Origin: Macrostomum hystrix
Taxonomy: Eukaryota; Animalia; Platyhelminthes
Assembly (NCBI GenBank): GCA_950097015.1
Contig: CATNEN010000032.1
Span: 744,001 to 808,000, forward strand
Direction of reading: 5' to 3'
DNA: 64,000 nt
Under the pieces are notes generated by a model that saw only the letters and a program-made list of their open reading frames with translations, did not search any database and had not been told where the DNA came from. The position numbers and the translations under genes were made by a program. The stretch's first letter is position 1. The number at the start of each line of letters is the position of its first letter. Positions 3,021 to 50,890 of this stretch are shown here, piece after piece.

Positions 3021-3022
3021 AA

Positions 3023-22048: not shown

Positions 22049-22181
22049 TATGGTAGTGTTTGCGAAAATTGTGTGGGCGTTTGCAGAGAGCAGAGGTTTA
22101 GTCGCCTTTTACGACAAGCTTGAGAAGCTGTAGTGCCATTCTTAATCCCGGTCACTACACGGCGAACAATAAACGAGTAAT

Positions 22182-30300: not shown

Positions 30301-31366
30301 TCTACGCATCATCCTGCCGAGAGACATCGCCAAGCCACTCGACCAAGACAACATGCAGCTTTGGCGCTTCACGCGGATCGTAATGGGCGCCAGCCCATCA
30401 CCCTGGATCCTTCTCACGGTGATCCACAAACTCTGCGCCGACGCCATCGCCGGTGGAACCCACCGTTTCGGACTCCACAAGGGCGAGGTTGAATCTATCC
30501 CTTCTGGGCTCTACATGGATAACCTCGTGCAAGGCTACGATTGCAAGACCGAGGGCCCTCGTTTCGTCGCTGGACTGCGGGCTCTATTCCACTCGGGGCA
30601 GTTCCACCTCCGGGAGTTCGCAGCAAACGACTCACAGGCTCTTCAGGGCCTCCCTGAGGAAGATCGCGTTGAGAACCCAGTCGTCAGAAACCTCGGTATC
30701 GTCTGGGACACCGTCAATGACACCATCCGACTTGCCAAGCCTACGATTTCATGCGGCATCACGCTTACTCGCGCCAGCTTACTGAGCGTCATCTCCCGCC
30801 CCTACGATCCATTTGGATACGTTGCCCCCCTCGTTCTGGCGGGCCGACTTCTCTACAGGGCGGCATTCAAGCCTAACGATGCCTGGGACACTCTGGCCGA
30901 TCCTGCCACCGTTGACGCTTGGTCCAGGCTCCGTTCAGACTTCGTTGACATCGACCGCATTGTCATACCTCGTCGCTGCGTCACGAAGCGCACTGTTCCC
31001 AGTCGCCTGGTCATCTTCAGTGATGGTTCACCACAGGCGTATGGCTTCACCGTCTATCTGCACCACACTCACGACGGTCGATCTTCCGCTTCCTAATTTC
31101 CTACGCCGTATCCTAGCCATCCGTACAGCCCCCCCAATCTGTCGGATTCATCTGGCAATCCTCCACGTTAATTCAAGCTTGCCCTACTGCGCTAAATTTA
31201 GCTCCTTGTTACACCTTGTTTACCCATAGACACCCCCAGCCTCAACTGTACTCTTAAATTAAATACAAAGTCGCCCAGCCGTTCCCCAAAAGAAACTACA
31301 CACACGCATGTTCGTTCTAGCAACTTAAGCTTAACATAAAGCCTTTGTCTCAGTCAGTTGACGACA
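27388..31366 (+). mobile_element. BEL/Pao LTR retrotransposon lacking integrase
   Basis: 227-bp TG...CA LTRs (27388-27614, 31140-31366), TSD GGGGG, PBS TGGTAGCAGAGCGTGGTTT (initiator tRNA-Met type) at 27618. Confidence 0.93.
27653..31096 (+). CDS. BEL/Pao Gag-Pol polyprotein truncated in RNase H
   Basis: FDGEDPAAFPAFW gag; three Cys/His knuckles; ALIDGG protease; SDIQSAFYQI and YMDN Pao RT; IFSDGSPQAYG RNase H start, then stop. Confidence 0.92.
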   Translation: MVNTRATSAETGDTTDPISGDHAGQEQATGGATAGPSAPLLQPTVAGQPPANQDMLQHLLGVMVTMMQQNQQLLTQLQSQTAAAPPAPAAVPDANPLPTARRPASFVGDSVLRNARLPTFDGEDPAAFPAFWGAFDHRIHALEMSPVDKFEVLRGLLTGAALRKLGGLDACQPGAYEEARRILEYNYGDLQEQKSACYKRLLDMPRLNDVDFRTLEPFADALRLTVGQLARLQEPEAAMDAYIHALWPKLPIALRTDIQDPRIKATQSPMPTMTDLQGHLDAKLRVLRAARTVTNEAPAEAPYSGASLLGAASNSCPPAAQNSGRSYAAGRHQHGPSRKNTIRCQDIAGWVYCDQSGHNASRCDRVTQPEDRFSAVRRKKLCFNCLGDHEARHCPSSSRCRKCGSKHHTSLHGAYPREPAIQTGAGPSAHSRRPHQPIVNSHLSDTSPLVESTEDSSGPVNAMSCVSSAQDSLLQPIVMATFSAPAVNPATGDSAPITALIDGGCSYTYLRGDIARRIGLQSLGTISLDSSACHAESRRRVHANIVRLELATLDGRRMPLKVLSVERIAPAIHLQALQLPKDILTTLAHLPLGIANAPPMVDKEVDLDLLIGNDYAQLLVGPSVGAIPLRRSFTAHLTPFGAVLTGSLTGTSDTHAICTRATELLCTGRLIVNSLHGLTEQPVPDNLSHLELLVDRMTSLEILGLGPNTERTTQSEDLQTKRLLDSATREPDGRFSVALPFKPGAEQLPSNFGQAYGRARAVHNRLDLLQRMKYYAEFEKRKTEGVLEIVDSRSPPGPIVHVLPHFPVIKESSNTTKIRPVVDASAPTSLGGSCLNDLLETGPNLLTDLLQVQLRLRVYEYACVSDIQSAFYQIMVHPGCRDALRIILPRDIAKPLDQDNMQLWRFTRIVMGASPSPWILLTVIHKLCADAIAGGTHRFGLHKGEVESIPSGLYMDNLVQGYDCKTEGPRFVAGLRALFHSGQFHLREFAANDSQALQGLPEEDRVENPVVRNLGIVWDTVNDTIRLAKPTISCGITLTRASLLSVISRPYDPFGYVAPLVLAGRLLYRAAFKPNDAWDTLADPATVDAWSRLRSDFVDIDRIVIPRRCVTKRTVPSRLVIFSDGSPQAYGFTVYLHHTHDGRSSAS

Positions 31367-31966: not shown

Positions 31967-33529
31967 ATGAATAACGAAGCTCTAAACCAAGACATTCAAA
32001 CAGGTACTGACAGAACTCCAGAACCCGGAGACGTTGATCAACAACAACAGCCACAAGATCAGTTAGATCAGCGAGAAGACCAGCTAGACCACAACGACGA
32101 GTGGGAAGACAACAACGAGCACTCATCAGACTCGGAAAACGAGGATAACGCAATGGAAGATCTCCAGAACCAAGTCCGAGAATTACAGCAGCGTCTCGCC
32201 ATGGCACACGGCAGAGACCTATCAGCCATAGTCCAGGCTCTCAAGTTATCGGCAGGAGACTACGAGATGGGACAGCCGTTTGTCAAATGGCTGACTGAAT
32301 TCGAGCTCCAGACAGCGACATATGGACTAACGGACGAAGAGAAGTGCCGACTACTACCACTCAGGCTGCGTCCTAACGCCCGTAATCAATACTCGGGACT
32401 CCCACAAGCTGCCCGAGAAGACTACGGACAGGTGAGAACACAACTCCGAGAGCTGTATGACACCAGAGCGATGGACCGACCCACGGCAGTACTTCAACTC
32501 TCCATGAGGATGCATCCAGGAGAGGATGTTAACAAGTTCATCGCCGACATCACACAACTAGTCGAGAACTCAGTGTTCCAAGAACCAGCACTGCGAGAGT
32601 TGGAACAGGACTCCAACGACGTACGCAAGCTGACAGCCATGGTAGCACAGATGGAGACTACAATCAGGCAAGCGGACCGGCGCACCCAAGATCGAGCTCA
32701 ACAGCCACAAAAGGAAGCCGCAACCAAGTACCCAGACGGCAATCCGAGGCCGACATGCCAACTCTGTGACAAGATAGGCCATACAGCCAACAGGTGCTAC
32801 CAAAGGAACAGGAACCTCGGTAAGAATACCGGGGGCCAAGTGCAGGCACAGGGCAGACAAGACCGAGGTAACATTAAGTGCCACAAATTTGGGAAGAGAG
32901 GACACTTTGCAAAGGAGTGCAGAGGTCAGCGATATTGCAAGAACTGCAATATGAATAACCATTGGACATCGGAGTGCGGCCGAGCACGCCAGAATAATCA
33001 AGAACGACAACAGCAGCAATGGCGACAGCCAAAGCAGATCGCCGAGGTCACAGCCCAGGACTCCAGCCCACAGCCAGCCCAATTGGCGAGTGAATCTAGC
33101 CAGACAGCGCACATTATGGCAATCAGCACGTTGGAAGCGACAATACCGACAAGGGCGAGAAACAACATCATACAGGCAAGGCGACAGAACAGGAAGAACA
33201 AGACGGCAACAGTTGCCCTAGTTCAGACCGTTCCACAACTCGAAGGACGAAAGCCAGAGCAGAGGGCTAGACAGGCCAGCACTGGCTGGAAAGCGCCGAC
33301 TGGACCGACAGTCGCACTTCTGCTGAAAATGCTACTCTTCGCACTGCTCTGCACATCGGCGGAAACGATAGGCCAAGGACAACAGAACTGGGTGGACACA
33401 CCGATGTACTGCCCGGAGCCCTCCAGGCCACAGATCTTCAAGCTGCCACCGGACATCGAGTGCAAGATGCCTAGCAGCATACAGCAGCACCGACAGCCGA
33501 TCAACCTGACAATCTTTAGACCGAATTAA
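31967..33529 (+). CDS. gag: Gag with three CCHC-like knuckles, in frame with a signal peptide and env-like ectodomain start
   Basis: FVKWLTEFE capsid; CQLCDKIGHTANRC, CHKFGKRGHFAKEC, CKNCNMNNHWTSEC; MLLFALLCTSAET hydrophobic leader (ATG 33329); PMYCPE...IECK. Confidence 0.8.
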   Translation: MNNEALNQDIQTGTDRTPEPGDVDQQQQPQDQLDQREDQLDHNDEWEDNNEHSSDSENEDNAMEDLQNQVRELQQRLAMAHGRDLSAIVQALKLSAGDYEMGQPFVKWLTEFELQTATYGLTDEEKCRLLPLRLRPNARNQYSGLPQAAREDYGQVRTQLRELYDTRAMDRPTAVLQLSMRMHPGEDVNKFIADITQLVENSVFQEPALRELEQDSNDVRKLTAMVAQMETTIRQADRRTQDRAQQPQKEAATKYPDGNPRPTCQLCDKIGHTANRCYQRNRNLGKNTGGQVQAQGRQDRGNIKCHKFGKRGHFAKECRGQRYCKNCNMNNHWTSECGRARQNNQERQQQQWRQPKQIAEVTAQDSSPQPAQLASESSQTAHIMAISTLEATIPTRARNNIIQARRQNRKNKTATVALVQTVPQLEGRKPEQRARQASTGWKAPTGPTVALLLKMLLFALLCTSAETIGQGQQNWVDTPMYCPEPSRPQIFKLPPDIECKMPSSIQQHRQPINLTIFRPN

Positions 33530-34170
33530 CCAGGTTACCCACCGATCAACACTCAAGATCTGTTATCGAGAAACGTATGTCTTCACCAGCATCGCACTGA
33601 GAACGCTGCACACGAGGGTGGTAAGCCCAGAAATGACTGTTAAGGTGCAGAAACATTTGGTCTCAGAGGAGGACTGTGAGTCCTGGGAGAAAGGTTACCG
33701 GACTCCAGATGGCACCCTTGAGGACGACGGGAAAGCCCCGAACAAAGCTGAACGATTCACTACTCATGTTTGGCCGGCAGAAGAATTGGAACCAACGGCT
33801 AGCACCCAAACCAGATACACGAAATCAGCGTCCACGCTGATAACGAAAATTCCGTTCTTCGTGGAGAATAAGAAAATGTCATCGCTATACATCCCACTAG
33901 GACATTGCAATTACACCATAGGAAAATGTCTTCACGAGTCCACTCTAGAGGTCGAGAGGGATGCGCCGTTGGAGAGACAGGTACCTAATAAACTATGGGA
34001 AGCTCTGAGATACTACGACACAACATTCAAGGTAGCTGGAGAACGCCAGTACAGATATGTCTGGACACCCAGCGCTGAAATCAACTGCCCTTACCAGGAA
34101 GACAAGCGAATAGAAGGAACTATTCACACAGGATGGCTCATGTCTAAGGACGCCACCTACGCTTTGACTT
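33520..34170 (+). pseudogene. env: Env-like glycoprotein ectodomain continuation (frameshifted, truncated by CACTA)
   Basis: KICYRETY...VSEEDCE...GHCNYTIGKCLHEST...YVWTP...CPY cysteine pattern resembling class III (rhabdovirus G-like) fusogens; N-glycosylation sequon NYT. Confidence 0.55.
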
Positions 34171-35201
34171 CCCGGGGAAAAAATCACACTTCACTTGCTA
34201 AGTTTTATTAAGTCATGTTACTATGCTTAGCAAGTACTTGCAAGTACTTCCCAATTACTTACTAAGTAGTAGCAAGTTGGGCAAGTTAAAGAGTAAACTT
34301 GTTAAGTCTTAATATGTTTCATATGTTTATGCGCATATTGAATAGATATACGCTAGATATGTTTGGGATGCAAATGAAGCTGTGCTTGTAATGATGCACG
34401 TGATTGGTACCAAATCCCGAATCAGCCATGGGTGCTGAGATCCAATAAAATAAAAATAAAAGCTAACGTGAAACCACTATATATTTCTTCATATGATGCA
34501 AATTGGTCACCTGCATGTTAACTCGAGAACTTCAGGACTCGCAATGTCAGAGTCCAGACAGAAAAAACTAAACTAAAAATTAAAAGAAAGCAAGAGAAGA
34601 TACAAACTTACAAAGCAAAGCAGAAGGAAAGCAAAATTACAATGGCTGAATGATCTTCAAACGTGTCAGCACAGAAATACACACAAAAGTGCAAAATGTC
34701 AGGAAATAATGAAACATATTCACTATCTCCAAACTAGAATCACTGGGCTGTGAGTTCCAAAAATGCATATTTTTCTGCCTTTCCTAGAATTAACACTTCG
34801 AATTTATAGAAATATTTCATTATATATATATGGGGAATTGGCTCCAATACAAACGCATTAATGCAGAGGCAGCGACAATGACTGAGTTGGCTCTAAGTGT
34901 TCTGAGCATGATGATTCAAAGTTCATAATCATCGGATGTGGCAATATAAGGGAGTCATTAGTCTGCGTCTTGCATGGGATGCACCCAGAACAAATGAAAA
35001 GTTCTAAAAGCATGTCTGGGCAGAGAGGAAGCTGTAGAAATGCAATATAATAAGCAGCTAGCATTCAGCAAAGGATGTAAAAAACAAACCACTGCACACA
35101 CCATAAGTCAAGCATAAGGAATTGACTATTCGTCCAGCAGGCTTATACAGAAAATTCCAGTTACACGGTTTTTTATGGCGCAATAGGAAAACTTGTCTTT
35201 G

Positions 35202-36894: not shown

Positions 36895-38583
36895 TTAGCA
36901 TTCCTTGCAGTGCTGGTGCACAATGAAACTTCTCAACCAAGCAGTAGAATCCAGTGTCAACATTGTAGAAAATATTTTTGATCTTAACATATGTCGCTGT
37001 TCAAGATTTGCAATGGCCAATGACCGAGATGTTGCTTCTTCTTTATATGTCTTGCACTTGAATGTTAAGCCCTTTACTGTAACAGCAGAGAACTCCATAT
37101 CTTTGTCAGATGAAGACACTGATAGCTGATGTTTAATAAGTGCTGTCACACCATCTTTGTCAGTCAGACAGGACTGGATGTTACTAGATTCAACTTTCCG
37201 CATAGTGCAATGTACATGAGAACGTATAAATCGTCTCACAATGAGGTTAGCTTCAGCTCTTGACCCTGTAACCAAACGAGTTAGCTGACCATAGAAACTC
37301 TCGAAGACAAATGCAGAGTGAGACCAAAGTGGACCAAATTGGCAAACTTGGTATGGGAGATGTCCAAGAGCATGAATTGAAAATGTCATTGAGCTGCTTC
37401 CAAAATTTTCAGCCAGGCAATGCTGAAATGCCTTAATAAGCTCACTAGCTTTAGAAATTACAGATGTTGTTACAACTGGAGCTGCCAATAGATGCATTGT
37501 AGTTGAAAGTAATGCATATAGAGTGATAAGTGGTATAGATTGGCAACTAGAACACAAAATAGGAACACTCAAATAGAGAAGAAATAGCTTCCATTCATTG
37601 GCCTTCCATCTGACTGAGTACTTCAATGCACGAGGGCGTCGCTTAAAATCTGTTGAAATAGTCACATTCTTGCAAAGCTGCTTAGATGCATCATCAACAT
37701 TGAATAGCTTCTTCTCAATGGCATAGAGTGTCAATGTTTTTACTACACCAAGATAGACCAGATGCATGCAGTCAAATGGTGCTGCAATAGGTATAGCAAT
37801 AATGCTAACCAATGGAGATGCCCCCTTGACACCATAGGAAGGCTTTTTTGGTGTACCTTTCTTTATATGCTTTTTATGTGCTTGTACATTGCGCAGCTTT
37901 GAGATAGTTGGTGAGTAAGTCATTTTTCGTGCCGCTGTCAGATAGACTCCTTTTGATTCACAAAAATTGCATGCATAATAGCCATTATAGGCAATCATAT
38001 TTAAGCAAGCTGCTTTTGCAGGTAAGTCAGCAATCAAAGCTACAATTCGAATATGAACAGTTGCACCTTGATATTCCATTGAGGCTGCTTCAATTGAATT
38101 GACAACTTCAGTCATAAAATCTTCAAAATTAGGCTTTGATGGACCATAGAAGATCATCAATAGAAGAACATTTTCAAATTTCCTTCTAATACTTGGCTCC
38201 AAGTTCAGAACAACTAATGAGACTGGCCAGATTGCATATCCTTTAGATTTGTGTGTAGGCACAACACCATCACAACTAATTAGACAGTTAATGTATTTCT
38301 TTCCATCTTTTGCCTCTTCTAGGGACTTGAAGTGAAGGCCATCCATAACATCACAGAACCTCTCAGGTTTAGAATAATGAGGATTGAAGATGGATGGAAA
38401 TCGTTCACAAATTGCACCAACTTGCTTAGCAATATCTAGGATATAATATATACCAGATTCTACATGCTTGACCTGCACATCTGTTAGAAAGTCATCTACT
38501 TCAGCTTTCTTGAGACTATAGAATGTTGGGCACAGGTTCCCTGGTGGAAGCACATCACCAATATATTCCAACATCTCTTTCAT
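36895..38583 (-). CDS. CACTA/EnSpm transposase (N-terminus continues frameshifted into 38626-39072)
   Basis: SCDG...IWPV; IADLPAK...NGYYACNFC; DCMHLVYLGV; WKANEWK; IHALGHL...GPLWSHSAFVFES. Confidence 0.88.
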   Translation of the reverse strand: MKEMLEYIGDVLPPGNLCPTFYSLKKAEVDDFLTDVQVKHVESGIYYILDIAKQVGAICERFPSIFNPHYSKPERFCDVMDGLHFKSLEEAKDGKKYINCLISCDGVVPTHKSKGYAIWPVSLVVLNLEPSIRRKFENVLLLMIFYGPSKPNFEDFMTEVVNSIEAASMEYQGATVHIRIVALIADLPAKAACLNMIAYNGYYACNFCESKGVYLTAARKMTYSPTISKLRNVQAHKKHIKKGTPKKPSYGVKGASPLVSIIAIPIAAPFDCMHLVYLGVVKTLTLYAIEKKLFNVDDASKQLCKNVTISTDFKRRPRALKYSVRWKANEWKLFLLYLSVPILCSSCQSIPLITLYALLSTTMHLLAAPVVTTSVISKASELIKAFQHCLAENFGSSSMTFSIHALGHLPYQVCQFGPLWSHSAFVFESFYGQLTRLVTGSRAEANLIVRRFIRSHVHCTMRKVESSNIQSCLTDKDGVTALIKHQLSVSSSDKDMEFSAVTVKGLTFKCKTYKEEATSRSLAIANLEQRHMLRSKIFSTMLTLDSTAWLRSFIVHQHCKEC

Positions 38584-39090
38584 TCCAGCATCGGAAATGC
38601 AATGCTTTGTACCAATGCATAAAAACTAGGCTTTAAAATCTTCTACCTTAATGCCAGCATCCTTATATAGTTCATCACTAGAACTAGAAAGCTCTGATGA
38701 TAAGGATGTATAAGACACAACTATGTCTTGTGCATTTCTACTGAAAGGCTCTGGTTCATCAAAAGGTATAGGTGATGATGAAATTGGTGGCTGAAAGTCA
38801 ATGTCTTCCAAAAATGTAGTATCATGCTGATCCTGAACAGCTTTAGGAAGACATATGCCATGGCTGAGCTCATTAGAAGAATCAGTCTTATTGCTTGTGC
38901 TTGAAGAGCTAGGCACTTCATGACGATAATATGGTTGTTGACTCCTTTTGACCAGGCATCTAGAATAGCGCTTTTCTTTCTTTGATCGTCTTTTGGGCAT
39001 GAGTCCTACATTTCTGCAACAAGCAAATGAAATAATAAAAATCAATGGTTGATCTTTAGCAATATATTTCATGCAAAGAAAATATATTTA

Positions 39091-39825
39091 TGTGAGTCGT
39101 AGGAGTGCTTGGGAGTTGGGTGGGGGCACGTGGTGTTCAATTCATGTTAAGTTGCGATCGTTCTTGTTGTGCATCACAGTGTACATCCTGCCACGTACTT
39201 AGCAAATATATAAATCACTAACTTTGGCCTTAGCCAACTTCGTGCTTTTTGGTTCAGAAGCTTGAGAGCGAAGCACAGCTCCCTCAGCGACTCTCCTTGG
39301 CGTCGCTTCCGGCTCTCGAACTCTGACATGGCGCGGAACGAGTTCTCCTTGCTGCTGTAGAACTTGACGAGCTCCTCCTTGATGCCGGCATAGCTCTTTT
39401 TCTTGTCCTCAGGCAGGTCCCGCACAAACACGAGCGCTTCGCCACTCAGCAGCAGCTTGATTTTCGAAGCCATCTTTGCGTCGCTCCACTCTGAGTCCGC
39501 TGAGAAGTCCTCAAAAAGCTGCAGCCACATGTTGATGTCTGCATCGTCGGCGCCGGAAAACTTGGGTGGCAAAAGTGCATTTGAGTGCGCCATGAGTGAG
39601 CCGGTTTGTGATAGAGGCCGCTGCCACCAATGTAAACTTGCAGGAAGGCGAGACTTGTGAGAGGGAGAAAGCACGAAGTTGGCTAAGGCCAAAGTTAGTG
39701 ATTTATATATTTGCTAAGTACGTGGCAGGATGTACACTGTGATACACAACAAGAACGATCGCAACTTAACATGAATTGAACACCACGTGCCCCCACCCAA
39801 CTCCCAAGCACTCATACGACTCACA
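39091..39825 (-). mobile_element. Fold-back Gypsy fragment: LTR-PBS-gag start closed by an inverted partial LTR
   Basis: Minus strand: 195-bp TG...CA LTR (39825-39631), PBS TGGTGGCAGCGG (39629-39618), gag PPKFSGADDADINMWL; 158-bp inverted arms 39091-39248 and 39668-39825. Confidence 0.88.
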
Positions 39826-40349
39826 TCATATTTAAAATAGCAACAAATATCTTTTAGCCATTGTTTCTTTAAGAATGAAAATATTTCCATCAAAATTATA
39901 TAAATAAAACAAATACATAGGCAAAATTTGTTTTAACCTTTCCCATTAAAAATCTAAACTAAAAATCAAATGTTTGCTTTAAAAATCTAAAAATGTAATC
40001 AGTCCTTAAGTAGAACTTTTAAAATACTAAATGTATCTAATTGCCGTCTTTTTCAATAAATTTGTCAATTGATATATCTTTATAGATAATATTTTATTTA
40101 TCATATCATTTTTTTCTATATTAGAAAGAAAAAATTATATAAGACAACCCTTCAATAAAAAAATAAATCTTCCATATATATTTGACATTTTAAAGGGCCT
40201 TTATTTTGTTAAACAATATCAAAGAAGCACTAGTTACTATTGATTATTATATTATAAGATGCTAGTAGTTCGAACGTATTCGCCGGCGTTGCTACAGTGG
40301 CCACAGCTAAAGACGGCACTGGAAGCCTCGCAAGAGCCTACTCGTCAGT

Positions 40350-40620
40350 AAGAATTTAGGGACGTGAATGTAAGGGCATAAGGAGACACGAGAGCCGAGA
40401 CACTGACACATTGTTAAGGCAGATGGGTCGTCTCGACCGGAAGTCCTATCATTGTGACACTCTCACTCAGGTGCAATCCTGAGGCTAGAACCAGTTTCAC
40501 GGAAAGAACTTTGGGAAAGCGCCTCGCTACCTGAAGAGTCGGACCAGTGAACTAGGGGAAGCCAGGCCCGTCAATCAAATTGAATTTAAGTTTAGAATAA
40601 CGAATAAGTACAAAAGCAAG
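40350..40620 (+). other. Conserved non-coding block shared by A and B (other copy 45684-45960)
   Basis: High identity between otherwise diverged elements; hairpins GGTCG/CGACC, CTCAGG/CCTGAG, TTCAC/GTGAA. Confidence 0.6.
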
Positions 40621-40779
40621 GCTCCATCGAATTCCATGATCAAACATTCACTATTTATTTGGCACTACAGACACATTGAGCAATCATCACAAAAAATACA
40701 CACAACAAAAAGATACACAAACAGACAAACAGTAGGAAGTCAAAGTGTCCAATAAGCGCACGAAGATACCAGGAGCCTA

Positions 40780-41037
40780 TCAGATGGGCATGGCAGTAGA
40801 CGCCGACAGGGGGCTCTGACGCCGCCGACAGCAGACCCAAAGCACTACGAGGCCGAAGAAGACGACGACCAGACCTCCAGCCCCTAGACCGCCAGACAGA
40901 CCCCGAACAGTTGCGAGTCCGCTCTCCAGCGCTGTTGTACGAGACACCTCCTCGGTTAGGCGGGTCTTAAGTCGACGGACACGCTCCTCTAGAAGAGCCA
41001 CGAGCTCCGTCAGTTGGGCAACTTCGTAGGGCGACAT
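40780..41037 (-). CDS. Antisense 85-aa coiled-coil/TM/CCRRR microprotein of element B
   Basis: MSPYEVAQL...LSGGLGAGGLVVVFFGLVVLWVCCRRR; 42/73 identical to 46238-46480 with no gaps. Confidence 0.8.
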   Translation of the reverse strand: MSPYEVAQLTELVALLEERVRRLKTRLTEEVSRTTALESGLATVRGLSGGLGAGGLVVVFFGLVVLWVCCRRRQSPLSASTAMPI

Positions 41038-41746
41038 AACAGAGTTAGTGAAGGTCTTAAACAAGGCGGAAAAGGTCACCTTGAAATGGGCAGGGGGCCC
41101 CGGGGAGGAATAGATATAGCCCAGCCTCAGAAGCGCGGGGGGGCTCAAGTGCGTACTTTACAGCCACCCCTCCGCCGCGGGGAACGGACTATAGAGTACA
41201 TCAGAGAGAGGCCAAACAAAATCATCAGTGCCTCGGGCTATCTTCGAGACCTAAGGTACACCAGGCCCCACAGAAGTCACATGCATAGATTGGACTAAAC
41301 CAACCATTGCCTCAGCAAACGAAAATAGAACACAAACAACAAACACACCACCAAGAATTCAGTTTGCTACGAATAAGCGAGACACAGGCAATTCAGAACA
41401 CATTATATTATAACTCCCTGACACATTGCTATAACCATTACAACACTATGAATTAAGTCATGTTATTGTCCTGAGAGTCCCAGAAATGTTATTATTCACT
41501 TGAGACCTCAAGGAACGTATATTCGCTATCAATACAACGTATTTTGATTTCGGTTTCTTTAAAAACCTCATAACTTATTTCTGTTAAACTCAATTTCAAT
41601 TGAATTTAAACATTAACTACAATAGATAGGCAGTAGCAACGGGTACGCCAGAGAGAACTTGGGAGGAAGTCCAGGAAAATAACCTGAGGGATAAAGAAAA
41701 ACGCATAGGAAAGCCACATGTCCTGGACACCTTTCCAGCAATTACG

Positions 41747-42088
41747 ATGGCCGACAGCGATTACAGCCGCCGCCCTGGAAAAAAATTTGTCGACATCGAC
41801 ATCCGGGGGCGGCCGGTCCTGAAGGCCGACGCGGCCACGCAGGTGGCCGAGGAGGAAATTGACGGCGGCCTGACGGTCGCCACGTCGAAAACCGACCTTA
41901 GAGAACTCTACCTAGAGGATTTTTATCCTACTAGGCAGGTGCACGGCACGTGGCCACCAGAGACCACTTATCGGCCCGAGCCCACCACCAGGCAGTGGCC
42001 CACCATCGATTGTTTCCGGCGTTATTACTGGGACAAATATCAGGTGCCACTGCTGGATGGCTACTACCCGTACTTTTATAATTTATAA
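41747..42088 (+). CDS. Conserved 113-aa orphan ORF before the PPT of element B
   Basis: ATG start, intact; clear homologue at 47204-47533. Confidence 0.7.
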   Translation: MADSDYSRRPGKKFVDIDIRGRPVLKADAATQVAEEEIDGGLTVATSKTDLRELYLEDFYPTRQVHGTWPPETTYRPEPTTRQWPTIDCFRRYYWDKYQVPLLDGYYPYFYNL

Positions 42089-42273
42089 GTAAAACTATAT
42101 TTATCTACGGTGCAGGTCAAATACATTTATTGAGTTCGTTTTTCATCAAGTATCAGATTTCAAACGTCTTATATGTTCACAGATCTACTAGCAGTAAGCA
42201 GATTAGCAACTCGATTAAGACAATAGGCTACATCTCCCTTGACCAGTCAAGGATTTCTTCAAAAGGGGGATGA

Positions 42274-43204
42274 TATAAGACTTAGAAATCTGAAGGGAAT
42301 TTAAGCGAGCGTTAGTTGGAAACTAAAACTAAAAATAGCAACAGCAGAGAGGGCGAGTAACTGAAAGGAGAATTATTAGACAAAACCCGCCCTGAGATCA
42401 ATTAATCATTTCAGCACAAACCCGGCTCGGCAGGGCAGCAGCGGTGCCGACGTAAAGCTGCCTGAGACCGGATCCGCAGCTGTGCTGACGTGGAACGACC
42501 CGAGACCGGACCTGCAGCTGCGCTGACGTGGAGCTGCTGGTATCAACTCGGCCTGTCCCGACCCACAGCTGCCTGCATCGACCCAACCCAGCCGAAACTG
42601 GAGCCGCCCGGACCCGATCGGGAACGAGATCTGGAGGAGCCCGGGACCGCACAAGAAGACGGGATCGATGAAAGGAAAGGGGATAACGAACAGTAGGAAA
42701 GAGATCTCAGTAGAAGGGGGAACGCATCCTAACTCAGCTAAGGCATTTTAAGACTTTTACCCACCCTCCATAGGAGAGGGGTTGGTGTGCCTGCCAACCA
42801 ACTAGTATAATGATAATGACTGTAATAGACTAGAGGCTGCGACCTCAACCCGCATAAATTTTCTCGCCAAATGTTGCTACGGTATTGCCTCCCCTCGGAT
42901 CGAGGGGTTTTAAAGATACTATATATATCGGTGCGGAGCGCGGAAAAAGATTCGCCGCGCGAGTTAGTTAGAGACTCACTTTGAGCTCCGTTTAGATAAA
43001 CTAGAAAATCATTGTGTTTGCGTTCTTTCTTAGGTAGAATCAGCGATAACGATCTAGAGAGATCACTACGACCAGCCGGTATACTGCGTATCGATAGTGG
43101 TTAGGAGTTATAGCCTTCAAGACTTTTAGACTGCAATAAACCGCTAGACAAATTATAGGAAACTACAAGTGAAGAAGAAGAAACATAAAACTTGAAGCGC
43201 TATA
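42274..43204 (+). repeat. 3' LTR of element B
   Basis: Diverged homologue of the A LTRs, preceded by PPT, followed directly by A pol sequence. Confidence 0.85.
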
Positions 43205-44749
43205 TCGAATATGTACCAGGAGCATCAGTCACACACGCAGTACCGGACGCACTCTCAAGGTTATACGACGAGAAACCAATTGACCAAGTCAATTATGTCA
43301 CAATATCGCATCCAATCCCACACCTACAAAGCACTCAAGGACGCCCAGGCGGAAGACCCGTTCTGCCAGCAAATCCGAGTGATGTGGAACGGAGAACCCG
43401 CAGTGGAATCACTGGCCCCGAAGTATAGGCGCCACATTGATAGACACATGGCGGACTACGCGGAGATTGGAGGAGTTCTACACAGAACAGCGGATCAGAC
43501 ACAGCAGATCATCCTACCGTTTCAGTACCGTGAGACCATTTGCCATTCACTACACGCATTGCCATTAGCGGCACATTTGGGATTTGAGAAAACCTTGGAG
43601 AGAATCCGCAGACACTATTTCTGGATTACCATGGTATCCGACATCCGAGGATTCTGCAACAATTGCCTAGAATGCGCCAGGAATAAATCAGGAAAAACCC
43701 ATAAGGGACTGATTCAGTTCTCGGAAATCCCAATGCGACCAATGGACAAATTGTCAGTTGACATAGTGGGTCCAATGGTACCTACTAAAGTGAGAAATGA
43801 AACGGTCACAAACATTCTCACAATTCTTTGTTGCTTTTCGAAATTTGCATTCGCCATTCCGATACCAGATCTCACAGCTGAAACGACGGCATAGACACTA
43901 TTCACAGTGTTTTGTACTTTTGGGATCCCGATAGAAATGTCCACGGACAGTGGAAAGAACTTCACAGCGACTCTACTAGCCGAAGCCTTAGAGATATTGA
44001 GGATTAAACATATTTTGACATCCCCATATAATCCTCGAGCGAACCATGTGGAACGGTTACACTCCACACTACACAATATGTTACGCCACTACACAGCCGA
44101 GAATCCGGACCAGTGGCATAAGTACCTGCAGGCAACGATGTTCGCATACAACACGGCAAAGCAATCTTCATCGACCTACTCGCCATTCGAGTTAGTCTTC
44201 GCCCGCCGACCTCTGATGCCTACCCAACTCACCACTCAGTTGGATCTAGTAAAGTACATGGACGAGCCGTCCTTCGCGACCCGAATGAAAGAAGCTGTCG
44301 TACTAGCCAGAGAGATAGCGAGACATCACCTACAGGTAGCACAAGAGAAGAATAGCGGAAAAGCTAATGCTAATCGCAAACTGACTACATTGGAAGTAGG
44401 CAGTAGAGTTATGCTACAGATCCCCATGAGACAGGGAAAGCACCAGGCAAAATTTACAGGACCCTATGAGATTGTGAAGAGGAGCAGCCAGACTTCAGTC
44501 ACAATCCGGAAAATCGACGACCCAAATCAGGAGTCCTTTCAAGTGCACACCGACCGGCTGAAACCAATGGCCACGTCAACACCACATGTGATGCTTCCTG
44601 ACCTCAGACCGAGCGACCCACAGCGCCACCAGCGACAGCCAAGGCAGCGATTCACCAAGGAAGTGAGCGTGCAGGCAGAGGAGCTGGACGCGCAGGCCGA
44701 CACGGCTCGGAAGAAATACAATCTGAGGAGCAAAGTGAAACTTCCTTGA
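43205..44749 (+). pseudogene. pol: RNase H end and integrase of element A (frameshift and in-frame TAG at 43892)
   Basis: EYVPG...PDALSR; HALPLAAHLG...CLEC; SVDIVGP, STDSGKNF, NHVERLH DDE; FTGPYEI and YNLRS tail. Confidence 0.9.
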
Positions 44750-44945
44750 CAATTGAGATCAAGGAAGGGAGGAAGCAGACGGACAATTTTACATTTTAAA
44801 CTATTTATTACTTTGTTGGTGTGCGCTCTGATATTTAGAATTAGATATTTTACACTACTTATAAGTAGCCACTATTTAATCACTCACAAATATTTAACCC
44901 ACCCTTCGGATAATCAGATGTATTCGACGGAGCTAGACACAGTGG

Positions 44946-45683
44946 ATGATTGCACTATCGATGAATCGCTTACGACCTACACACTGGTCAAGCCACTGTT
45001 TGCATCGGCAGAACCAAGCAAGGCAGTCGGGAAGGAGGTGGAACGTTAGGAACAGCGCCGCCACTGAACAGCAACGGCGACATCTCCAAGCCCAATGGGA
45101 GATCAGAAGATCTAGAGATGGACTGCCGCAGTGCCCAACAGCACTGAGAGAGAGCTACAGACGGGGAGAAAAAGACCTGTCATTCACGGAGCTGTACAAC
45201 CTTATGGACAGACAGCCCATCCAGAGCAAGCCCAATCGGCAAGGTGAGATGAAACTATTTGACATTCACCTGGAGATGTTGGATGCGCCACGAATCCCAG
45301 CTAACATAGTGACGCACCTAACAACGGAGCGCATCCTGGCCGATGATAATAACCCACTCTGGCTCCTCTCGGACTATAACATTCTCCGTAACCGAACAAC
45401 AATTTTCTGTCACTATGGAGAACAAGACGCGTTTACCTGTGTCATAATCAAGGCGCTCTGCCGTACGCTAGCCGTCAATCTGATTCACCCTTGGGGCCCG
45501 CAACCTACTGCGATATGTACTAAGTTATTCAATTACTTGTCTAACGTGTTGGTTTATCATGGAATTCAGAGTAGTTGCCACGAAATGAAGAAGCTAGTAG
45601 TTCGATCGTATTCGCCGGCGTTGCTACAGTGGCCACAGCTAAAGACGGCACTGGAAGCCTCGCTAGAGCCTACTCGCCAGTAA
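44946..45683 (+). CDS. Orphan 245-aa ORF after integrase in A
   Basis: Long open frame; C-terminus LVVRxYSPALLQWPQLKTALEASxEPTRQ is conserved in B at 40262-40349; true start uncertain. Confidence 0.55.
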   Translation: MIALSMNRLRPTHWSSHCLHRQNQARQSGRRWNVRNSAATEQQRRHLQAQWEIRRSRDGLPQCPTALRESYRRGEKDLSFTELYNLMDRQPIQSKPNRQGEMKLFDIHLEMLDAPRIPANIVTHLTTERILADDNNPLWLLSDYNILRNRTTIFCHYGEQDAFTCVIIKALCRTLAVNLIHPWGPQPTAICTKLFNYLSNVLVYHGIQSSCHEMKKLVVRSYSPALLQWPQLKTALEASLEPTRQ

Positions 45684-46237
45684 GGATTTAGGCACGTGAA
45701 TGTAAGGGCATAAGGAGACACGAGAGCTGAGACACTGACACAGGGTTAGGACAGATGGGTCGTCTCGACCGGAAGTCCTATCCTTATGGCACTCTCACTC
45801 ACAGTGCAATCCTGAGGCTAGAACCAGGTTCACGGGAAAAACTTTGGGAAAGCGCCTCGCTACCTGAAGAGTCGGACCAGTGAACTAGGGGAAGCCAGCC
45901 CGTCAATCAAAGTGAATTCAAACTTAGAATAGCGAAGAAATACAAAGACAAGGCTTCACCGAATTCCATGATGAGGCACACTCTATTTATCATATGCAAA
46001 ACCACTATTACTTCCGACACGTTTATTCACTCCGACACGTGTATTCACTCCGACACGTACTAGCACTAGCAAATCACTACTTGCAAACAAAAAAAACAAT
46101 GAAAGAAAAATACACAAAAATAATGGAAGAAAAAATACATGTCAATATGAATGAACATACACCAGCAAACAAGAGAGCAGACATACAGAGCAAATCAGCA
46201 GCACACCATGAATCGTCACATGAATGCGACACAACAG

Positions 46238-46480
46238 TCAAGGTGTCATAGGAGCGGCCTTGCGCCGCCGGCAGCAAAGCAACACGAGAAGTAATCCGAA
46301 CAAGGCCAGGGCTAGGCCTCCGGCTCCGAGACCTCCGGAGAGACTGCGTAGAGCCACCAACCCGTTCTCTAAAGAATGGGTGCGCGTAGCCTCTAGGGCC
46401 AGGCGGGCCTCCAGGCAAAGGACCCGAGCCTCTAGCTCGGAGACCAGCTTGGCGAGTTGGGCCACCTCAAAGCGAGACAT
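46238..46480 (-). CDS. Antisense 80-aa coiled-coil/TM/CCRRR microprotein of element A
   Basis: MSRFEVAQL...LSGGLGAGGLALALFGLLLVLLCCRRRK; ATG start, intact, homologous to 40780-41037. Confidence 0.8.
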   Translation of the reverse strand: MSRFEVAQLAKLVSELEARVLCLEARLALEATRTHSLENGLVALRSLSGGLGAGGLALALFGLLLVLLCCRRRKAAPMTP

Positions 46481-47203
46481 GGAAAAGAGTTGTCGATGGG
46501 GCAGACGAAAATACAGTTAAGAAGATACGTGAGAACAGATAGGGGGCCCAGGGGAAAAGTTTACATAACCTAGTCCAAGACAAGATGGATGGCAAGAATG
46601 CCCTAATCACAGCCACCCCCTCCGCCGCGGAGAATGGACCCCAATGTACATCACGAGAGACGAAAAGTAGCGCTGCTCATGTCGCCCCAAAACCCTCTGT
46701 GTGACTTTAGCCCAAAGAAATGACACCAGAACCATAGCAGTCACAAATCGAAAGTGGATACTTCTAACCGCTGCCTCACTGGAAAAGGACATTAGCGACA
46801 TTGAATAAAAAACACGACTGATACGAAAAGAGACACAACAAGATCAAAACACACAAGTGACACAACACAATAGCAATACACCACAATGTTACACCCAACG
46901 CGATAAAATAATCTAAAACATGTTATCATCCTGAGATTCCCAGAACTATTATTAATCAACTGGGACCTCAAGGAGCATATATTCTCATTACACTTGATAA
47001 TCGAGGAATAATATTTAGGCTTTGTTACAGGCTTCACTTCTCTCTTACTAAATTTCAATTAAATAGTATAAGTCGACATTAGTAGATAGGCAGTAGCAAC
47101 TAGTGCACCAGAGAGAACTTAGGAATATGACAAGGAGAAAGACCTGAGGGATGAAGCAAAAAGTATTGGAAAACTCACACACTTGAGATACCCTTCCAGC
47201 ACA

Positions 47204-47533
47204 ATGGCCAATAGTGATTACGACCGCCGCCCAGGACAAAGATTTGTGGATGTCGACATCCGGGGGCAGCCGGTTGTGAAGGCCGACGCGGTCACGTAAG
47301 TGACCGCGGAAGATATAGATGGCGGAATATCGGTCACAACCTCTACAACCGACCTCCGTGAGCCTTACCTGGAGGACTGCTATGAAACCAGGCAGGCGCA
47401 TGGCACCTGGGAGGCCCAGGGCGACTATCAGCCCGAGCCGAAACCTAAACATCCGCCGTGGCCCACCATCCGAACCCTCCGACGATACGCCAGAGAACAG
47501 TACCCCGAACCGCCGGAGGATGGACAATTTTAA
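47204..47533 (+). pseudogene. A copy of the pre-PPT orphan ORF with one nonsense codon
   Basis: MANSDYDRRPGQRFVDVDIRG...DAVT*V; TAA where B has CAG. Confidence 0.7.
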
Positions 47534-47779
47534 CGATCGAATACTAATTAACTCAGGATTAAAAACCACGCATACTCACAACATATTATTCACTATTTAC
47601 AACAATGCTTAAACAAATGAATTACACACTTACCCATTTAGCCTCTTAATCTAATAGTTTCAGATTTCACCGTCTTATATGTTCACATACCTACCAGCAG
47701 TAGACAGATTAGCAATTCGAGTCAGACAATAGATTGCATCTCCCTTGACCAGTCAAAAATTTCTTCAAAAGGTGGATGA

Positions 47780-48681
47780 TATAAGACTTAGAAATCTGAA
47801 GGGAATTCAAGAGTTCGCTAGCAGAAAGCTAAAAGCTAAAAATAGCAACAGCAGAGAGGGCAAACAACCAAGGGGAGAGAGACTGGACAAAAACCCGCCC
47901 CGAAGTCACTTCATCATTTCAGCTCAGGCCGGGTCGGCATGGCAACAGCGTGCTGACGTGGAACTGCCTGAGACCGGACCCGCAGCTGTACTGACGCGGC
48001 GCTGCCGGAATCAACCCGGCCTGTCCCTGCCTGCAGCTGCCGGCGTCGGCCCAGCCCAGCCCGCATTGGGAGCCGCCTGGGCCCGGCCGGGAACGAGAGC
48101 TGGAGGAGGACGGAACCGTACAAGAAAACGGGATCGATAAAAGGCGAAGGAATAACGAACGGTGGGAGAGAAGTTTCAGTGGAAGTGGGAACATATCCTA
48201 ACTCAACTAATGCGTTTTTAAGACTGTAACTCACCCTCCATGGGAAAGGGGTTGGCGTGCCTGCCAACCAACTAGTTTAACGTTAATAACTGTACTAGGC
48301 TGGAGGCTGCGACCTCACTCAACACAAATCCTCATGAGTACTTTTGCTACGGTAATGCCTACCCTCGGATTGAGGGGTTTTGAAGACAGAATATATATCG
48401 GAGCGGAGCGCGGGAAAAGGACCGCCGCGCCAGTTAGTTAGAGAATCTGTTTGAGCTCTGTTAAGCTAAATTTATCAGAAAACTCAGTGTGTTTGTGTTA
48501 TATCTTGAGTAGAAGCTAAGGTAACGATCCCGAGAGATCATCACAGCCAGCCGGTATACTGAGTGTCGATAGTCGTTAGGAGTTATAGCCTTCAAGACAT
48601 CTAGACTGCAATAAACCGCTAGACTAATTATATTTTGAAAGACACTAAAATCGATGAGATTAGAAAGCTTGAAGCGCTATA
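47780..48681 (+). repeat. 3' LTR of element A (902 bp)
   Basis: PPT AAAAGGTGGATGA (47767-47779) upstream, TSD ATGCT downstream. Confidence 0.92.
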
Positions 48682-48885
48682 ATGCTAAAAAACGATTTTA
48701 TAAACCACTGCTAAAATCTATGTCTGTTTTATCCGCGGTTACAACCCGTAGTTAGACAAGTTGTGCCATAGACTGTTAATTTACTGTGTCGTCCTCAATA
48801 GCCGGAGTATGGTTTACTTATAGGAATAGGCTTGCCAAACCAAGCCATGAGTGACTTGTCGCTTAACAAAAACAAATGCTGAAAC

Positions 48886-49575
48886 ATGGTCTCACTTGAA
48901 GCAAAGAAAATCTTCCTTTTGGAGGTTCTAAAACGTAAGGAAGTCATTCTTGGAAAGTTCGACAGCTATTCGGATGGAAAGCGAAAGAAGTCAACTGCAT
49001 GGAACGAGGTAACGGAAGTAATGCGGAGTCGAGGGGTCAACAAGAGTGCCAGTCAGTTAAAAGACGTTCTGTGGAAGAACATCCGAATGGCTACGGTAAA
49101 GAAAATTGACGAAAAAAGGCGGACTGAGAGTGATGGCGGCGCGGATAAACGACTGACGGAACTAGACAGCCTGGTACTGGACATAATTGGAAAAGATACT
49201 GCAAGCGTGTCTGGGTTGGATGTCCATGATTCGCTTCCAACGAATGACCAATCCAGTGCTTCTTCCGCGAAGGTCCAAGCAAGTGTGCCTCCAACAAAAG
49301 ATCTGGGAGAACATGAGAATCCGAGGGCGAGCGCGCTAGTGACTCAGACGCCGTCGATGTTGGCCCTGTTAGAAGAGTCTCCTCCTGCTTCAGACGTCGT
49401 CCGATCGACAAGCAAGAGCACAGGAAACATGGAACGAGGAAATGCGCATCGCAAGCGCAGGATCCTCGATGAGAAAGAGAGGCTCTTGATTGATAATTTA
49501 AGGCTCAGGAACGAGAAGCTTCGATTGGAGATCGAAAAACTGCAGCACAACAGGGCTAGGTCCCCAGTTTTGTAG
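48886..49575 (+). CDS. Harbinger Myb/SANT DNA-binding protein, 229 aa
   Basis: KKSTAWNEVTEVM...KSASQLKDVLWKNIR trihelix motif, C-terminal coiled coil, convergent with the transposase. Confidence 0.85.
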   Translation: MVSLEAKKIFLLEVLKRKEVILGKFDSYSDGKRKKSTAWNEVTEVMRSRGVNKSASQLKDVLWKNIRMATVKKIDEKRRTESDGGADKRLTELDSLVLDIIGKDTASVSGLDVHDSLPTNDQSSASSAKVQASVPPTKDLGEHENPRASALVTQTPSMLALLEESPPASDVVRSTSKSTGNMERGNAHRKRRILDEKERLLIDNLRLRNEKLRLEIEKLQHNRARSPVL

Positions 49576-49843
49576 CTGAGTGCGTCGCGTCTCTATACTA
49601 GAGTAAAGTTCCGAGTGCATTGTGCTGACGTTTGTGAAATGACATTTTTCGGCTTCTGTTATAATCGTTTACTGTTACCTTAAACTGTTTACGGATACTG
49701 TTTGCCAAAAAAAAGTGTAATAGTAAATTAACAACCTGTTAAACATTAAACAGAAAAATAAACTCAGTAAAACTAGACGGAAAGAGACAAAGCAGCTGGA
49801 AGCATACTGTTCGTTCGAAGTTCGTGAATTATCAGACAATCAG

Positions 49844-50890
49844 TTACGCCTTAAAATTTGCAATTAAGGCAGCCCGCCTTTGAGCTCTCTGATGATTATT
49901 AACCGGCGCAACACCAATGACGTGCTCTTCTTGGCCAATGACGTATTCCTCGATGATGGCGTCGTCGACCGCTCCTTCGAGAGCGATGCAGAAGTTATGA
50001 ATAGTGACACAAGCCTTTACCACCTGAGCAGCCGCCTCTGGACCAACGACTCGCAACATGCGCAGACAAGGGAAGCGGAGTTTTAGTAGTCCAATACTGC
50101 GCTCCACCAGAGACCGGGTCACCCTGAGAGCTCTGTTGAAGGCCCTGGTCGCAGCAGGAAGGTTGTCACCGAGAACTGGGGTAATAAGCCAATCCATGCA
50201 AGGATAGATTGAATCACCCAAAATAACGGCCCCTGGGAAAGGGCGAGAGCCATTGTCCTCGAAAGCAGTGTAGAGACTACTGTTGCGCAGCACCCGCGCA
50301 TCGTTGACGCTGCCAGGCCATGAGGCGTTGCACGCTTGGAAGTGGTGCTGCGGACCAGCAACAAGCATGACGTTTAAAGAATGGTTCCCTTTGCGGTCCA
50401 CGAACTGCTCCTCGTTAAGTCTCGGAGAAGCGATCTGCACCAATGTTCCGTCGATAATGCCACAGACTGATGGCATTGCGGCAATGTCAAAAAAGTCCCT
50501 GCACATCGACAGCGACTCATTTTGGTTCGGCCAGCACACGAACTCTTGAAAAAGTTGCTCATTCACAACCCGCGTGACTTTGCGAACGACTTGACAGACG
50601 GTAGCTTCGGATGGTCCGTGCGCATCTCTTAGCAAATGATAGAAGCCATTGGTGGCGTAATAACGAAGTGTTGTTAGAAGCTGTTCTTTTGGGGACAGTG
50701 CACAGTTTTGCCTGCTTGCCTGTGCCAATTGTGCTCCTATTCGCTGCAGCAGCGCCTCCGCAGTAGCGGGATTTACCCGAAAGCGTTGCCTAAAATCTGC
50801 GTTGACGAGGAAGTTCTTCCTTTCGAGGAAAACACGAGGCGATCGGCGTCGTTCAGCATTTAGCATCCCATGGACGTGTAGAAAATCCAT
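49844..50890 (-). CDS. PIF/Harbinger DDE transposase, 348 aa, intact
   Basis: CGIIDGT, DRKGNHSLNV, WPGSVNDARV, ILGDSIY, RSLVERSIG. Confidence 0.93.
   Translation of the reverse strand: MDFLHVHGMLNAERRRSPRVFLERKNFLVNADFRQRFRVNPATAEALLQRIGAQLAQASRQNCALSPKEQLLTTLRYYATNGFYHLLRDAHGPSEATVCQVVRKVTRVVNEQLFQEFVCWPNQNESLSMCRDFFDIAAMPSVCGIIDGTLVQIASPRLNEEQFVDRKGNHSLNVMLVAGPQHHFQACNASWPGSVNDARVLRNSSLYTAFEDNGSRPFPGAVILGDSIYPCMDWLITPVLGDNLPAATRAFNRALRVTRSLVERSIGLLKLRFPCLRMLRVVGPEAAAQVVKACVTIHNFCIALEGAVDDAIIEEYVIGQEEHVIGVAPVNNHQRAQRRAALIANFKA

Follow-up and report, generated by a model that had tools for sequence, protein, structure and literature searches.

An antisense microprotein gene with a leucine zipper and one predicted transmembrane helix in a Ty3/gypsy-type LTR retrotransposon family

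Introduction

Does a short open reading frame (ORF) that runs antisense between pol and the 3' long terminal repeat (LTR) of a retrotransposon encode a genuine protein, and, if it does, what could this protein do for the element? The question is raised by a transposon-rich stretch of 64,000 nucleotides on contig CATNEN010000032.1 (referred to below as the window), in which two copies of such an ORF, A and B, accompany two related LTR retrotransposons of the Ty3/gypsy type. An earlier reading of the letters of this stretch (the sequence-only reading) had proposed that copy B encodes a conserved microprotein with a leucine zipper, a Gly-rich segment, one transmembrane helix and a CCRRR motif. 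It had further proposed that the product may act as a minimal fusogen, comparable with the FAST (fusion-associated small transmembrane) proteins of reoviruses, or else as a tetherin-like regulator of superinfection. The statement that we favour, taken as a whole and with its mechanism included, is that the ORF encodes an accessory, self-associating membrane microprotein of the element in the position of env. We assign it a rough probability of 0.4, and its parts are graded separately below.

Results

Coding capacity of the antisense ORF

Copy B comprises 85 amino acids as counted from its ATG, and lies within a 122-amino-acid ORF when the frame is taken from the first ATG, GTG or TTG past the preceding stop. 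When 1.84 billion representative proteins were searched with a profile, one true relative emerged, an 85-amino-acid hypothetical protein of Macrostomum lignano (GenBank PAA87975.1; P0001), which is referred to here as copy C. By BLASTP, A and B are identical at 42 and similar at 57 of 75 positions, with 0 gaps (E 5e-14). The gap-free match with 42 identities announced by the sequence-only reading was therefore reproduced, except that the denominator is 75 and not 73. At the DNA level the A and B ORFs are 62% identical, and blastn pairs neither the ORFs nor their flanks (about 40660-41620) while it does pair the regions on either side, in agreement with the claim that the flanks had diverged.

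The differences between the copies follow the codon. Between A and B, 50, 61 and 29 of 75 codons are identical at the first, second and third position, respectively, and in all three pairs of copies the second positions are 81-87% identical and the third positions 39-52%. The ratio of nonsynonymous to synonymous substitution rates (dN/dS, Nei-Gojobori method), which had been proposed as a check on A and B, was 0.17 for this pair and far from 1; likewise it was 0.23 for A-C and 0.22 for B-C, dS being near saturation at the third positions of this gene. In 2000 random-substitution replicates run for each pair, the observed ratio of the corresponding proportions (pN/pS) was never reached (0 of 2000). 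The decapeptide LSGGLGAGGL is invariant in the three copies although many synonymous differences are present. Only the microprotein frame is free of stops in A, B and C, each of the other five being interrupted in at least two copies. Since dN/dS is low in all pairs and this is the sole frame open in all copies, the ORF is almost certainly a genuine protein-coding gene under purifying selection. The proposal of a small protein encoded antisense in an LTR retrotransposon is thus borne out in all three copies.

Long open frames do arise on both strands of GC-rich DNA, and the sequence here is about 62% GC; the strand opposite to the microprotein is likewise open over the copy A stretch. A chance open frame, conserved for some reason other than its protein, is nevertheless hardly credible and is already largely refuted. 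Codon periodicity of the substitutions is confined to this frame, stops interrupt each of the other five and the random-substitution controls fail to match pN/pS as described above, and conservation tracks the heptad core positions of the predicted protein. Two further readings of the stretch were rejected. A sense-strand reading meets stops in two of the three copies. An N-terminally longer protein would require an in-frame upstream extension that is present in copy B only, and the M. lignano gene model uses the same Met.

As judged from dN/dS, the constraint on the microprotein is as strong as that on the pol C-terminal domain (0.18). The microprotein changes faster, with an A-C dN of 0.30 versus 0.03-0.08 for pol. 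Its A-C dS, 1.3, is also higher than that of the adjacent pol blocks (0.24-0.84; blocks compared individually, as counts) and that of the flanking conserved block described below. The raised dS may reflect either a mosaic history, through recombination between lineages, or a locally different mutation regime.

Predicted anatomy of the microprotein

With the three-sequence alignment as input, AlphaFold predicted a helix at residues 3-48, a break at 49-52, a second helix at 53-73 and a disordered tail (mean predicted local distance difference test score, pLDDT, 68.6). The register read from the sequence places six heptads in residues 6-44, and the series L9-L16-L23-E30-L37-V44, which had been picked out by the sequence-only reading, is present as its d position. 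The a positions are occupied by V, V/L, V, L, T and L, and the d positions by L, L, L, E, L and V/L. Invariant residues are found at 5 of 6 a, 6 of 7 d and 5 of 6 g positions, versus 1 of 6 b, 2 of 7 c and 0 of 7 f positions. Because the core positions are conserved and the b, c and f positions on the surface vary, the segment bears the signature of a coiled coil that would associate with itself and whose surface is free to vary. Beta-branched residues at a together with Leu at d favour a parallel dimer, and a parallel dimer would likewise be favoured for the zipper of the microprotein. R33 (g) and E38 (e) are placed to pair across helices, and E30 and T34 make up a conserved polar layer of the core.

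The hinge next to the zipper, S48-G55, consists of small residues and belongs to the region of the invariant decapeptide. There is one hydrophobic segment, at about residues 47-68 (hydrophobic core about 51-69), with a mean Kyte-Doolittle value of 2.5-2.8 and with G62 kept, and the transmembrane helix comes directly after V/L44, the last core residue of the heptads. CCRRR is invariant in the three copies and is succeeded by K, R or Q; the 7-12 residues past RRR are poorly conserved and predicted to be disordered. The single transmembrane segment, the invariance of LSGGLGAGGL and CCRRR, and the absence of a signal peptide (the N-terminus is hydrophilic) all stand as the sequence-only reading had described them. 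The N-domain includes no N-glycosylation sequon and no conserved cysteine. The hinge, and with it the first half of the transmembrane helix, is under the strongest constraint, a distribution that fits a membrane-active role over that of a mere anchor.

Predicted membrane insertion and topology

With this predicted anatomy, the microprotein very probably inserts in a membrane. Its orientation is less clear, and an N-out/C-in topology is slightly favoured by three observations. The charge balance agrees with the positive-inside rule, the 15 residues that precede the transmembrane helix having a net charge of about +1, as read from the alignment, and those after it one of +3 to +4. The juxtamembrane dicysteine is invariant, and S-acylation occurs on the cytosolic face. 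The sub-threshold Pfam matches of the transmembrane halves fall mostly on transmembrane-juxtamembrane profiles of N-out/C-in proteins (ErbB1, VEGFR-2, EphA2, DAP10 and reovirus p10).

Two features are at odds with this topology. The transmembrane helix ends 12-17 residues before the C-terminus, so that it would still be in the ribosome at termination and would escape co-translational recognition, and the N-domain, with 11-14 charged residues among 46, would be costly to translocate. Post-translational recognition of a C-terminal helix is the hallmark of tail-anchored proteins, the N-terminus of which is cytosolic. The microprotein could accordingly be a tail-anchored adaptor, inserted after translation, the coiled coil facing the cytosol and the basic tail lying on the lumenal or intermembrane side. 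Its site could be the endoplasmic reticulum or, given the basic tail, the mitochondrial outer membrane or peroxisomes, and it would recruit or organise components of the element such as Gag, or modulate a pathway of a host organelle. The short distance to the C-terminus, the charged and helical N-domain and the basic residues on both flanks of the helix (R45 and RRR) all agree with tail anchoring. The combination of a coiled coil with a C-terminal anchor is common in cells, as in SNAREs and Mff, and a gag-like ORF inside the outer element has, by eye, a short heptad-like stretch near its N-terminus. Tail anchoring would, however, put the charge of +3 to +4 and the dicysteine on a non-cytosolic side, against the positive-inside rule, and would leave CC without an obvious role. 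In addition, no SNARE, synaptobrevin or other tail-anchored profile was matched at E values up to 10, and the freedom of the b, c and f positions to vary argues against a specific heterologous partner. We regard the tail-anchored adaptor as possible but unlikely.

The host element

The host element is an LTR retrotransposon family of the Ty3/gypsy type (Metaviridae-like), probably from Macrostomum flatworms, and the microprotein gene is its integral antisense part. Copy A is assigned to an outer element that spans 25969-48681 (22.7 kb), and copy B to an element nested in it, of which the 3' end occupies 40256-43204, directly upstream of the outer pol remnant. The coordinates of the features are listed in Table 1. 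The plus-strand polarity of the element was deduced from the LTRs, the polypurine tract, the primer-binding-like site, the TATA and AATAAA that the outer 3' LTR holds in + orientation, the 5-bp duplication, and the Integrase_H2C2 and rve domains on the + strand of the outer pol remnant. The two outer LTRs are 99.85% identical save for one 132-nt length difference (absent from the 5' LTR), and their termini are TA...TA, not TG...CA.

Table 1. Positions of the microprotein gene copies, their candidate transcription signals and the surrounding parts of the host elements in the window
Feature	Position	Strand	Remarks
Microprotein gene, copy B	40780-41037	-	85 codons + stop; six heptads, Gly-rich hinge, transmembrane helix, CCRRR, 12-residue tail
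Microprotein gene, copy A	46238-46480	-	80 codons + stop
AATAAA, copy B	40654-40659	-	sole one downstream of copy B, 121 nt past stop; candidate poly(A) signal
AATAAA, copy A	46022-46027	-	sole one downstream of copy A, 211 nt past stop; candidate poly(A) signal
TATA-like TATATC, copy B	41113-41118	-	81 nt upstream of ATG; candidate own promoter
Outer element, 5' LTR	25969-26737	+	flanked at 25964-25968 by target-site duplication ATGCT; primer-binding-like site that starts with TGG lies 2 nt past LTR
Outer element, 3' LTR	47780-48681	+	polypurine tract 47767-47779; target-site duplication ATGCT at 48682-48686
Outer element, pol remnant	43205-45683	+	end of RNase H region, integrase, family-specific C-terminal domain
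B-type element, pol end	40259-40351	+	last 30 codons + stop; remaining coding region missing
Nested B-type element, 3' LTR	42274-43204	+	about 82% identical to outer LTRs; polypurine tract 42261-42273
Conserved non-coding block, B side	40352-40653	none	directly after pol stop, about 300 nt
Conserved non-coding block, A side	45684-45990	none	counterpart of B-side block
Sense small ORF, B side	41747-42088	+	113 aa, between microprotein gene and LTR
Sense small ORF, A side	47300-47533	+	77 aa as it stands; start not conserved with B

The same order of parts is found around A, around B and at the M. lignano locus of copy C (L001, 20 kb): pol stop, conserved non-coding sequence of about 300 nt, antisense microprotein gene, spacer and LTR. 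The antisense ORF lies between pol and the 3' LTR, at the same relative position, in 3 of 3 copies, and no env gene was seen between pol and LTR in any of them. The pol DNA of the window element is 85-87% identical to that of the M. lignano copy. The outer pol remnant is broken, being cut on its 5' side by the nested element and carrying at least one in-frame stop and at least one frameshift, and it differs from copy C by one length difference of about 0.3 kb. At L001, pol is split into at least four pieces.

The non-coding block after the pol stop, with its L001 counterpart at about 10390-10705, is about 90% conserved among A, B and C, versus 62-73% nucleotide identity for the microprotein ORF. 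Its insertions and deletions have lengths that are not multiples of three. Folding z-scores were -1.4 for the + strand and -1.9 for the - strand, with covariation too scant among three sequences, and no Rfam family was detected in 40000-49000. The block is probably a cis-acting element.

A sense small ORF, separated from the microprotein gene by a spacer of about 700 nt, faces away from it. Between its A and B versions 55, 55 and 32 of 75 codon positions are identical and pN/pS is 0.38, which is a coding signature. This ORF lacks a transmembrane segment, matches nothing in Pfam and is absent from the M. lignano copy C.

Candidate signals of an antisense transcription unit

Candidate signals accompany the gene in each copy. 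In addition to those in Table 1, copy C has one AATAAA, 139 nt past the stop, and TATATC too, at -114; copy A has a weaker TATA-like sequence, TATGTAAA, at -87 (46560-46567). In the source annotation of L001, the microprotein ORF is the sole called gene, with a single exon and the same Met and stop. The GenBank annotation of the M. lignano assembly consists of stranded RNA-seq transcript models, cut at trans-splicing and poly(A) sites (PMC5730564). As the gene model of PAA87975.1 belongs to this set, it gives a hint of antisense RNA. It is fairly likely that the microprotein gene has a promoter and a poly(A) site of its own, for which these signals are the candidates. The promoter is probably internal rather than LTR-borne, because the microprotein gene lies at a variable distance, 0.7 to 1.3 kb, from the LTR. 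A heat-shock-element pattern matched once, in another part of the window and no more often than expected by chance.

An antisense unit might regulate the element rather than act for it. It would then restrain or time the element, and the means could be either antisense RNA that pairs with genomic RNA or the protein itself, acting as a decoy anchored in the membrane or as a factor that limits superinfection. Across lineages of plant Ty3/gypsy elements, antisense additional ORFs (aORFs) recur between pol and the 3' LTR and are suspected of a regulatory function; retroviruses, too, have antisense genes (PMC7264820, PMC11963269). The microprotein gene adjoins the strongly conserved non-coding block, and its ORF is intact in three copies with defective pol. 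A role of the RNA only, however, would yield neither the three-base periodicity nor a dN/dS of about 0.2, a tetherin-type mechanism requires two anchors where one is present, and no env was seen between pol and LTR with which a heptad decoy could interfere. A purely regulatory function is improbable on this evidence.

Search for relatives

Homologue searches with copy B, and with the neighbouring 245-aa pol C-terminal ORF, found nothing, and the search with the three-sequence profile found the M. lignano protein only. The profile search of the 1.84 billion representatives, made with no length limit, gave besides P0001 only generic long coiled-coil proteins, and a scan of metagenome contigs gave 466 pattern matches and 0 relatives. 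Exact look-ups of A, B and ten further ORFs of the window returned no entry from the protein collection. Against Pfam, whole proteins and halves gave sub-threshold, compositional matches only. In PDB there was no significant sequence match and no fold match, and the best match among the viral structure models of BFVD (E 4.5) was not a FAST protein; these fold searches are weak, the query being two helices with a pLDDT of 68.6. The microprotein is without detectable relatives beyond A, B and C. In the literature, no antisense transmembrane ORF was found described for an animal LTR retrotransposon, and the main text of a survey of 137 M. lignano LTR families is silent on antisense or additional ORFs (PMC12801592).

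These searches also bear on whether the gene is a captured or domesticated host sequence, that is, a transduced fragment of a host membrane protein that is carried passively and would comprise a juxtamembrane coiled coil, the transmembrane helix and the start of the tail. LTR retrotransposons do transduce host fragments (PMC7264820), and the transmembrane half weakly resembles the receptor transmembrane-juxtamembrane profiles named above. Capture is very improbable all the same, as no host homologue was present among the representative proteins, and as all copies share the start, a stop soon after the transmembrane helix, and purifying selection across diverged lineages of the element.

Other elements in the window

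The outer element has near-identical LTRs and a clean 5-bp duplication, yet contains many nested insertions, which are many events for so young a pair. Its interior comprises the nested fragment of a related element, a Pao-type element that is likewise nested, ORFs of transposases and further debris. The Pao-type element (BEL/Pao type, 27388-31366) has 227-nt LTRs of 100% identity and one 1167-aa ORF (DUF1759, Peptidase_A17); it is short for its type and is probably internally deleted. At 31967-34211 (+), a gag-like ORF of 520 aa, which has three zinc knuckles of the CCHC type and a hydrophobic, signal-peptide-like end, precedes an ORF of 197 aa that contains Cys and is unmatched in Pfam. This region possibly represents the outer element's gag linked to a remnant that resembles env, in which case a sense membrane protein was once present in the family. 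At 39090-39826, a short way upstream of the truncated B-type element, a pair of 159-nt inverted repeats (98.7%) surrounds a gag-like ORF fragment (-).

At 20700-25300 (-), in a low-GC, strongly GC-skewed stretch, there is a further pol of the Ty3/gypsy type (RVT_1, RNase H, Integrase_H2C2), whose protein shares about 40% identity with that of the microprotein-bearing family. Direct repeats of 2.3 kb at 708-3026 and 9868-12185 are 99.9% identical, 9.2 kb apart and flank a gag-like ORF (4245-5399), and may represent either paired LTRs of very great length or a segmental duplication of recent date. From 63177 on, a tandem array whose units recur every 66 nt runs off the end of the window (64000) and overlaps long ORFs on both strands. 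Further mobile elements were seen at 48886-50890, 36895-38583 and 57644-60847; these comprise a Harbinger/PIF-type pair (Myb-like ORF and DDE_Tnp_4), a Transposase_21/DUF1258 transposase, and an ORF of a long interspersed nuclear element with endonuclease and reverse transcriptase.

Discussion

The mechanism that we propose begins with a compact antisense transcription unit between pol and the 3' LTR. Its product would be a parallel coiled coil of 45 residues, with a Val-rich a and a Leu-rich d position, continued by a flexible Gly-rich hinge and a transmembrane helix. In the membrane, the microprotein would form a parallel oligomer with the zipper projecting outward (N-out/C-in), while the Arg cluster and the cysteines, which are probably palmitoylated, would lie on the cytosolic face. 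It could thereby serve as the membrane-acting factor of the element, helping particles or RNA to reach another cell. This role is proposed because no env was found in that position in the three copies, and because the sORF2 proteins of insect elements, which are FAST-like, offer a precedent. By that analogy a role in transfer or fusion is conceivable, though on balance doubtful. Still less likely is the fullest form of the idea, namely that an env-free strategy of the FAST/sORF2 type was invented independently outside arthropods, with an antisense minimal dimeric zipper/transmembrane protein that moves the element between cells. In this form the protein would have no recognisable ancestor and be uncoupled from the translation of genomic RNA. 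The probability beyond the readings named in this text is left for roles that we have not thought of.

Only in 2025 were small membrane proteins shown to pass env-less insect retrotransposons from somatic cells to the oocyte, and all of these are sense-encoded and from arthropods. A selected antisense transmembrane microprotein in a flatworm Ty3/gypsy family would extend this theme to another phylum and to a different logic of expression, and animals would then have an equivalent of the antisense aORFs known from plants. M. lignano is a model species for which stranded RNA-seq, data on 5' ends and poly(A) sites and a genome browser are already available, so that expression and distribution of the gene are open to study in existing material. 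Being short and repeat-masked, such ORFs escape standard annotation, and searches that require TG...CA may miss the family because its LTRs end otherwise.

One known system close to the microprotein is the sORF2 of the insect MDG1 group, which comprises FAST-like transmembrane proteins of 63-107 aa that are seen with capsids at the plasma membrane (PMC11952523). The sequence-only reading had pointed to FAST-like small sense ORFs in some insect LTR retrotransposons, and this is correct (PMC11952523). Like sORF2, the microprotein, at 80-85 aa, is the product of an accessory ORF of an env-lacking Ty3/gypsy-type element, and it shares a single central transmembrane helix, an amphipathic N-terminal segment and a polybasic cluster right after the helix; some lepidopteran sORF2 also sit downstream of pol. 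The two differ in that the N-terminal part here is a charged leucine zipper of 46 aa and the sORF2 ectodomain measures about 30 aa, that the start is M-S in place of the MGxxxS/T myristoylation motif of most sORF2, and that CC stands after the helix where sORF2 has Tyr. A cytoplasmic amphipathic motif is absent here, and no sequence relationship is detectable.

With reovirus FAST protein p10, the microprotein shares a small size, a single pass, the absence of a signal peptide, and a membrane-proximal dicysteine beside a polybasic cluster. The former is encoded by an RNA virus and the latter by a retroelement. According to literature cited in one report, the dicysteine of p10 is palmitoylated (PMC11952523). 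The Pfam profile Orthoreo_P10 (PF07204) did not match the whole proteins; among the halves it matched the transmembrane half of copy C only, at profile positions 47-67 of 98, with 13.1 bits versus a cut-off of 21.4 (E 0.095).

Several considerations lower our confidence in the favoured statement, besides the position of the helix and the charge of the N-domain noted under topology. The analysis has three copies of one transposable-element family as its material, and the support so far is sequence-based. Class I fusion cores are trimeric, but the coiled-coil pattern here points to a dimer. In contrast to p10, the microprotein has no N-myristoylation motif (M-S, not M-G), its ectodomain has no hydrophobic patch to disturb a target membrane, and there is almost no endodomain, with 7-12 residues past the basic cluster. 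It is antisense with candidate signals of its own, whereas sORF2 is forward and on the gag-pol transcript, and antisense coding uncouples it from genomic RNA, unlike every reported sORF2/FAST-like case. All 105 sORF2 candidates reported are in forward orientation (PMC11952523). Membership in the FAST or sORF2 kind is not upheld in view of the sub-threshold p10 score, the lack of a fold match, of myristoylation and of the patch, the short tail and the antisense strand. The microprotein may work like a FAST/sORF2 protein, yet it is no member by any test run.

The tetherin-like alternative fares no better, since two anchors are needed and one was found, the N-terminus being hydrophilic; a glycosylphosphatidylinositol signal is incompatible with the basic residues that follow the transmembrane helix. 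SNAREs and Mff resemble the microprotein in that the heptads lead straight into a C-terminal transmembrane helix whose tail is very short, and in the conserved polar layer of the zipper core. They differ from it in that the microprotein tail is strongly basic with a dicysteine and the zipper has only 12 core layers.

Among retroviral antisense products, HBZ of HTLV-1 is a nuclear leucine-zipper protein with a basic DNA-binding region, and ASP of HIV-1 is hydrophobic and membrane-associated, longer and with multiple hydrophobic segments. Both are encoded antisense near the 3' end of a retroelement, as is the microprotein, which combines the zipper of HBZ with the membrane association of ASP. 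It differs from them in the absence of homology in any search and in lacking the basic DNA-binding region of HBZ.

The plant antisense aORFs, exemplified by Grande gene23, RIRE2 and Retand TRP28, are of unknown function (PMC7264820, PMC11963269). None of their domains (e.g. TRP28, PF04195) was matched by the microprotein in Pfam at E values up to 10. An upstream promoter of its own has been shown for Grande, where the present family has a candidate TATA-like motif. The plant products are larger and nuclear or DNA-binding, whereas the microprotein is a predicted transmembrane protein from an animal element. They are alike in that the genes occupy the same place and strand, are conserved across copies and have no homologues outside their lineage, and by place and strand the plant antisense aORF is the closest known kind.

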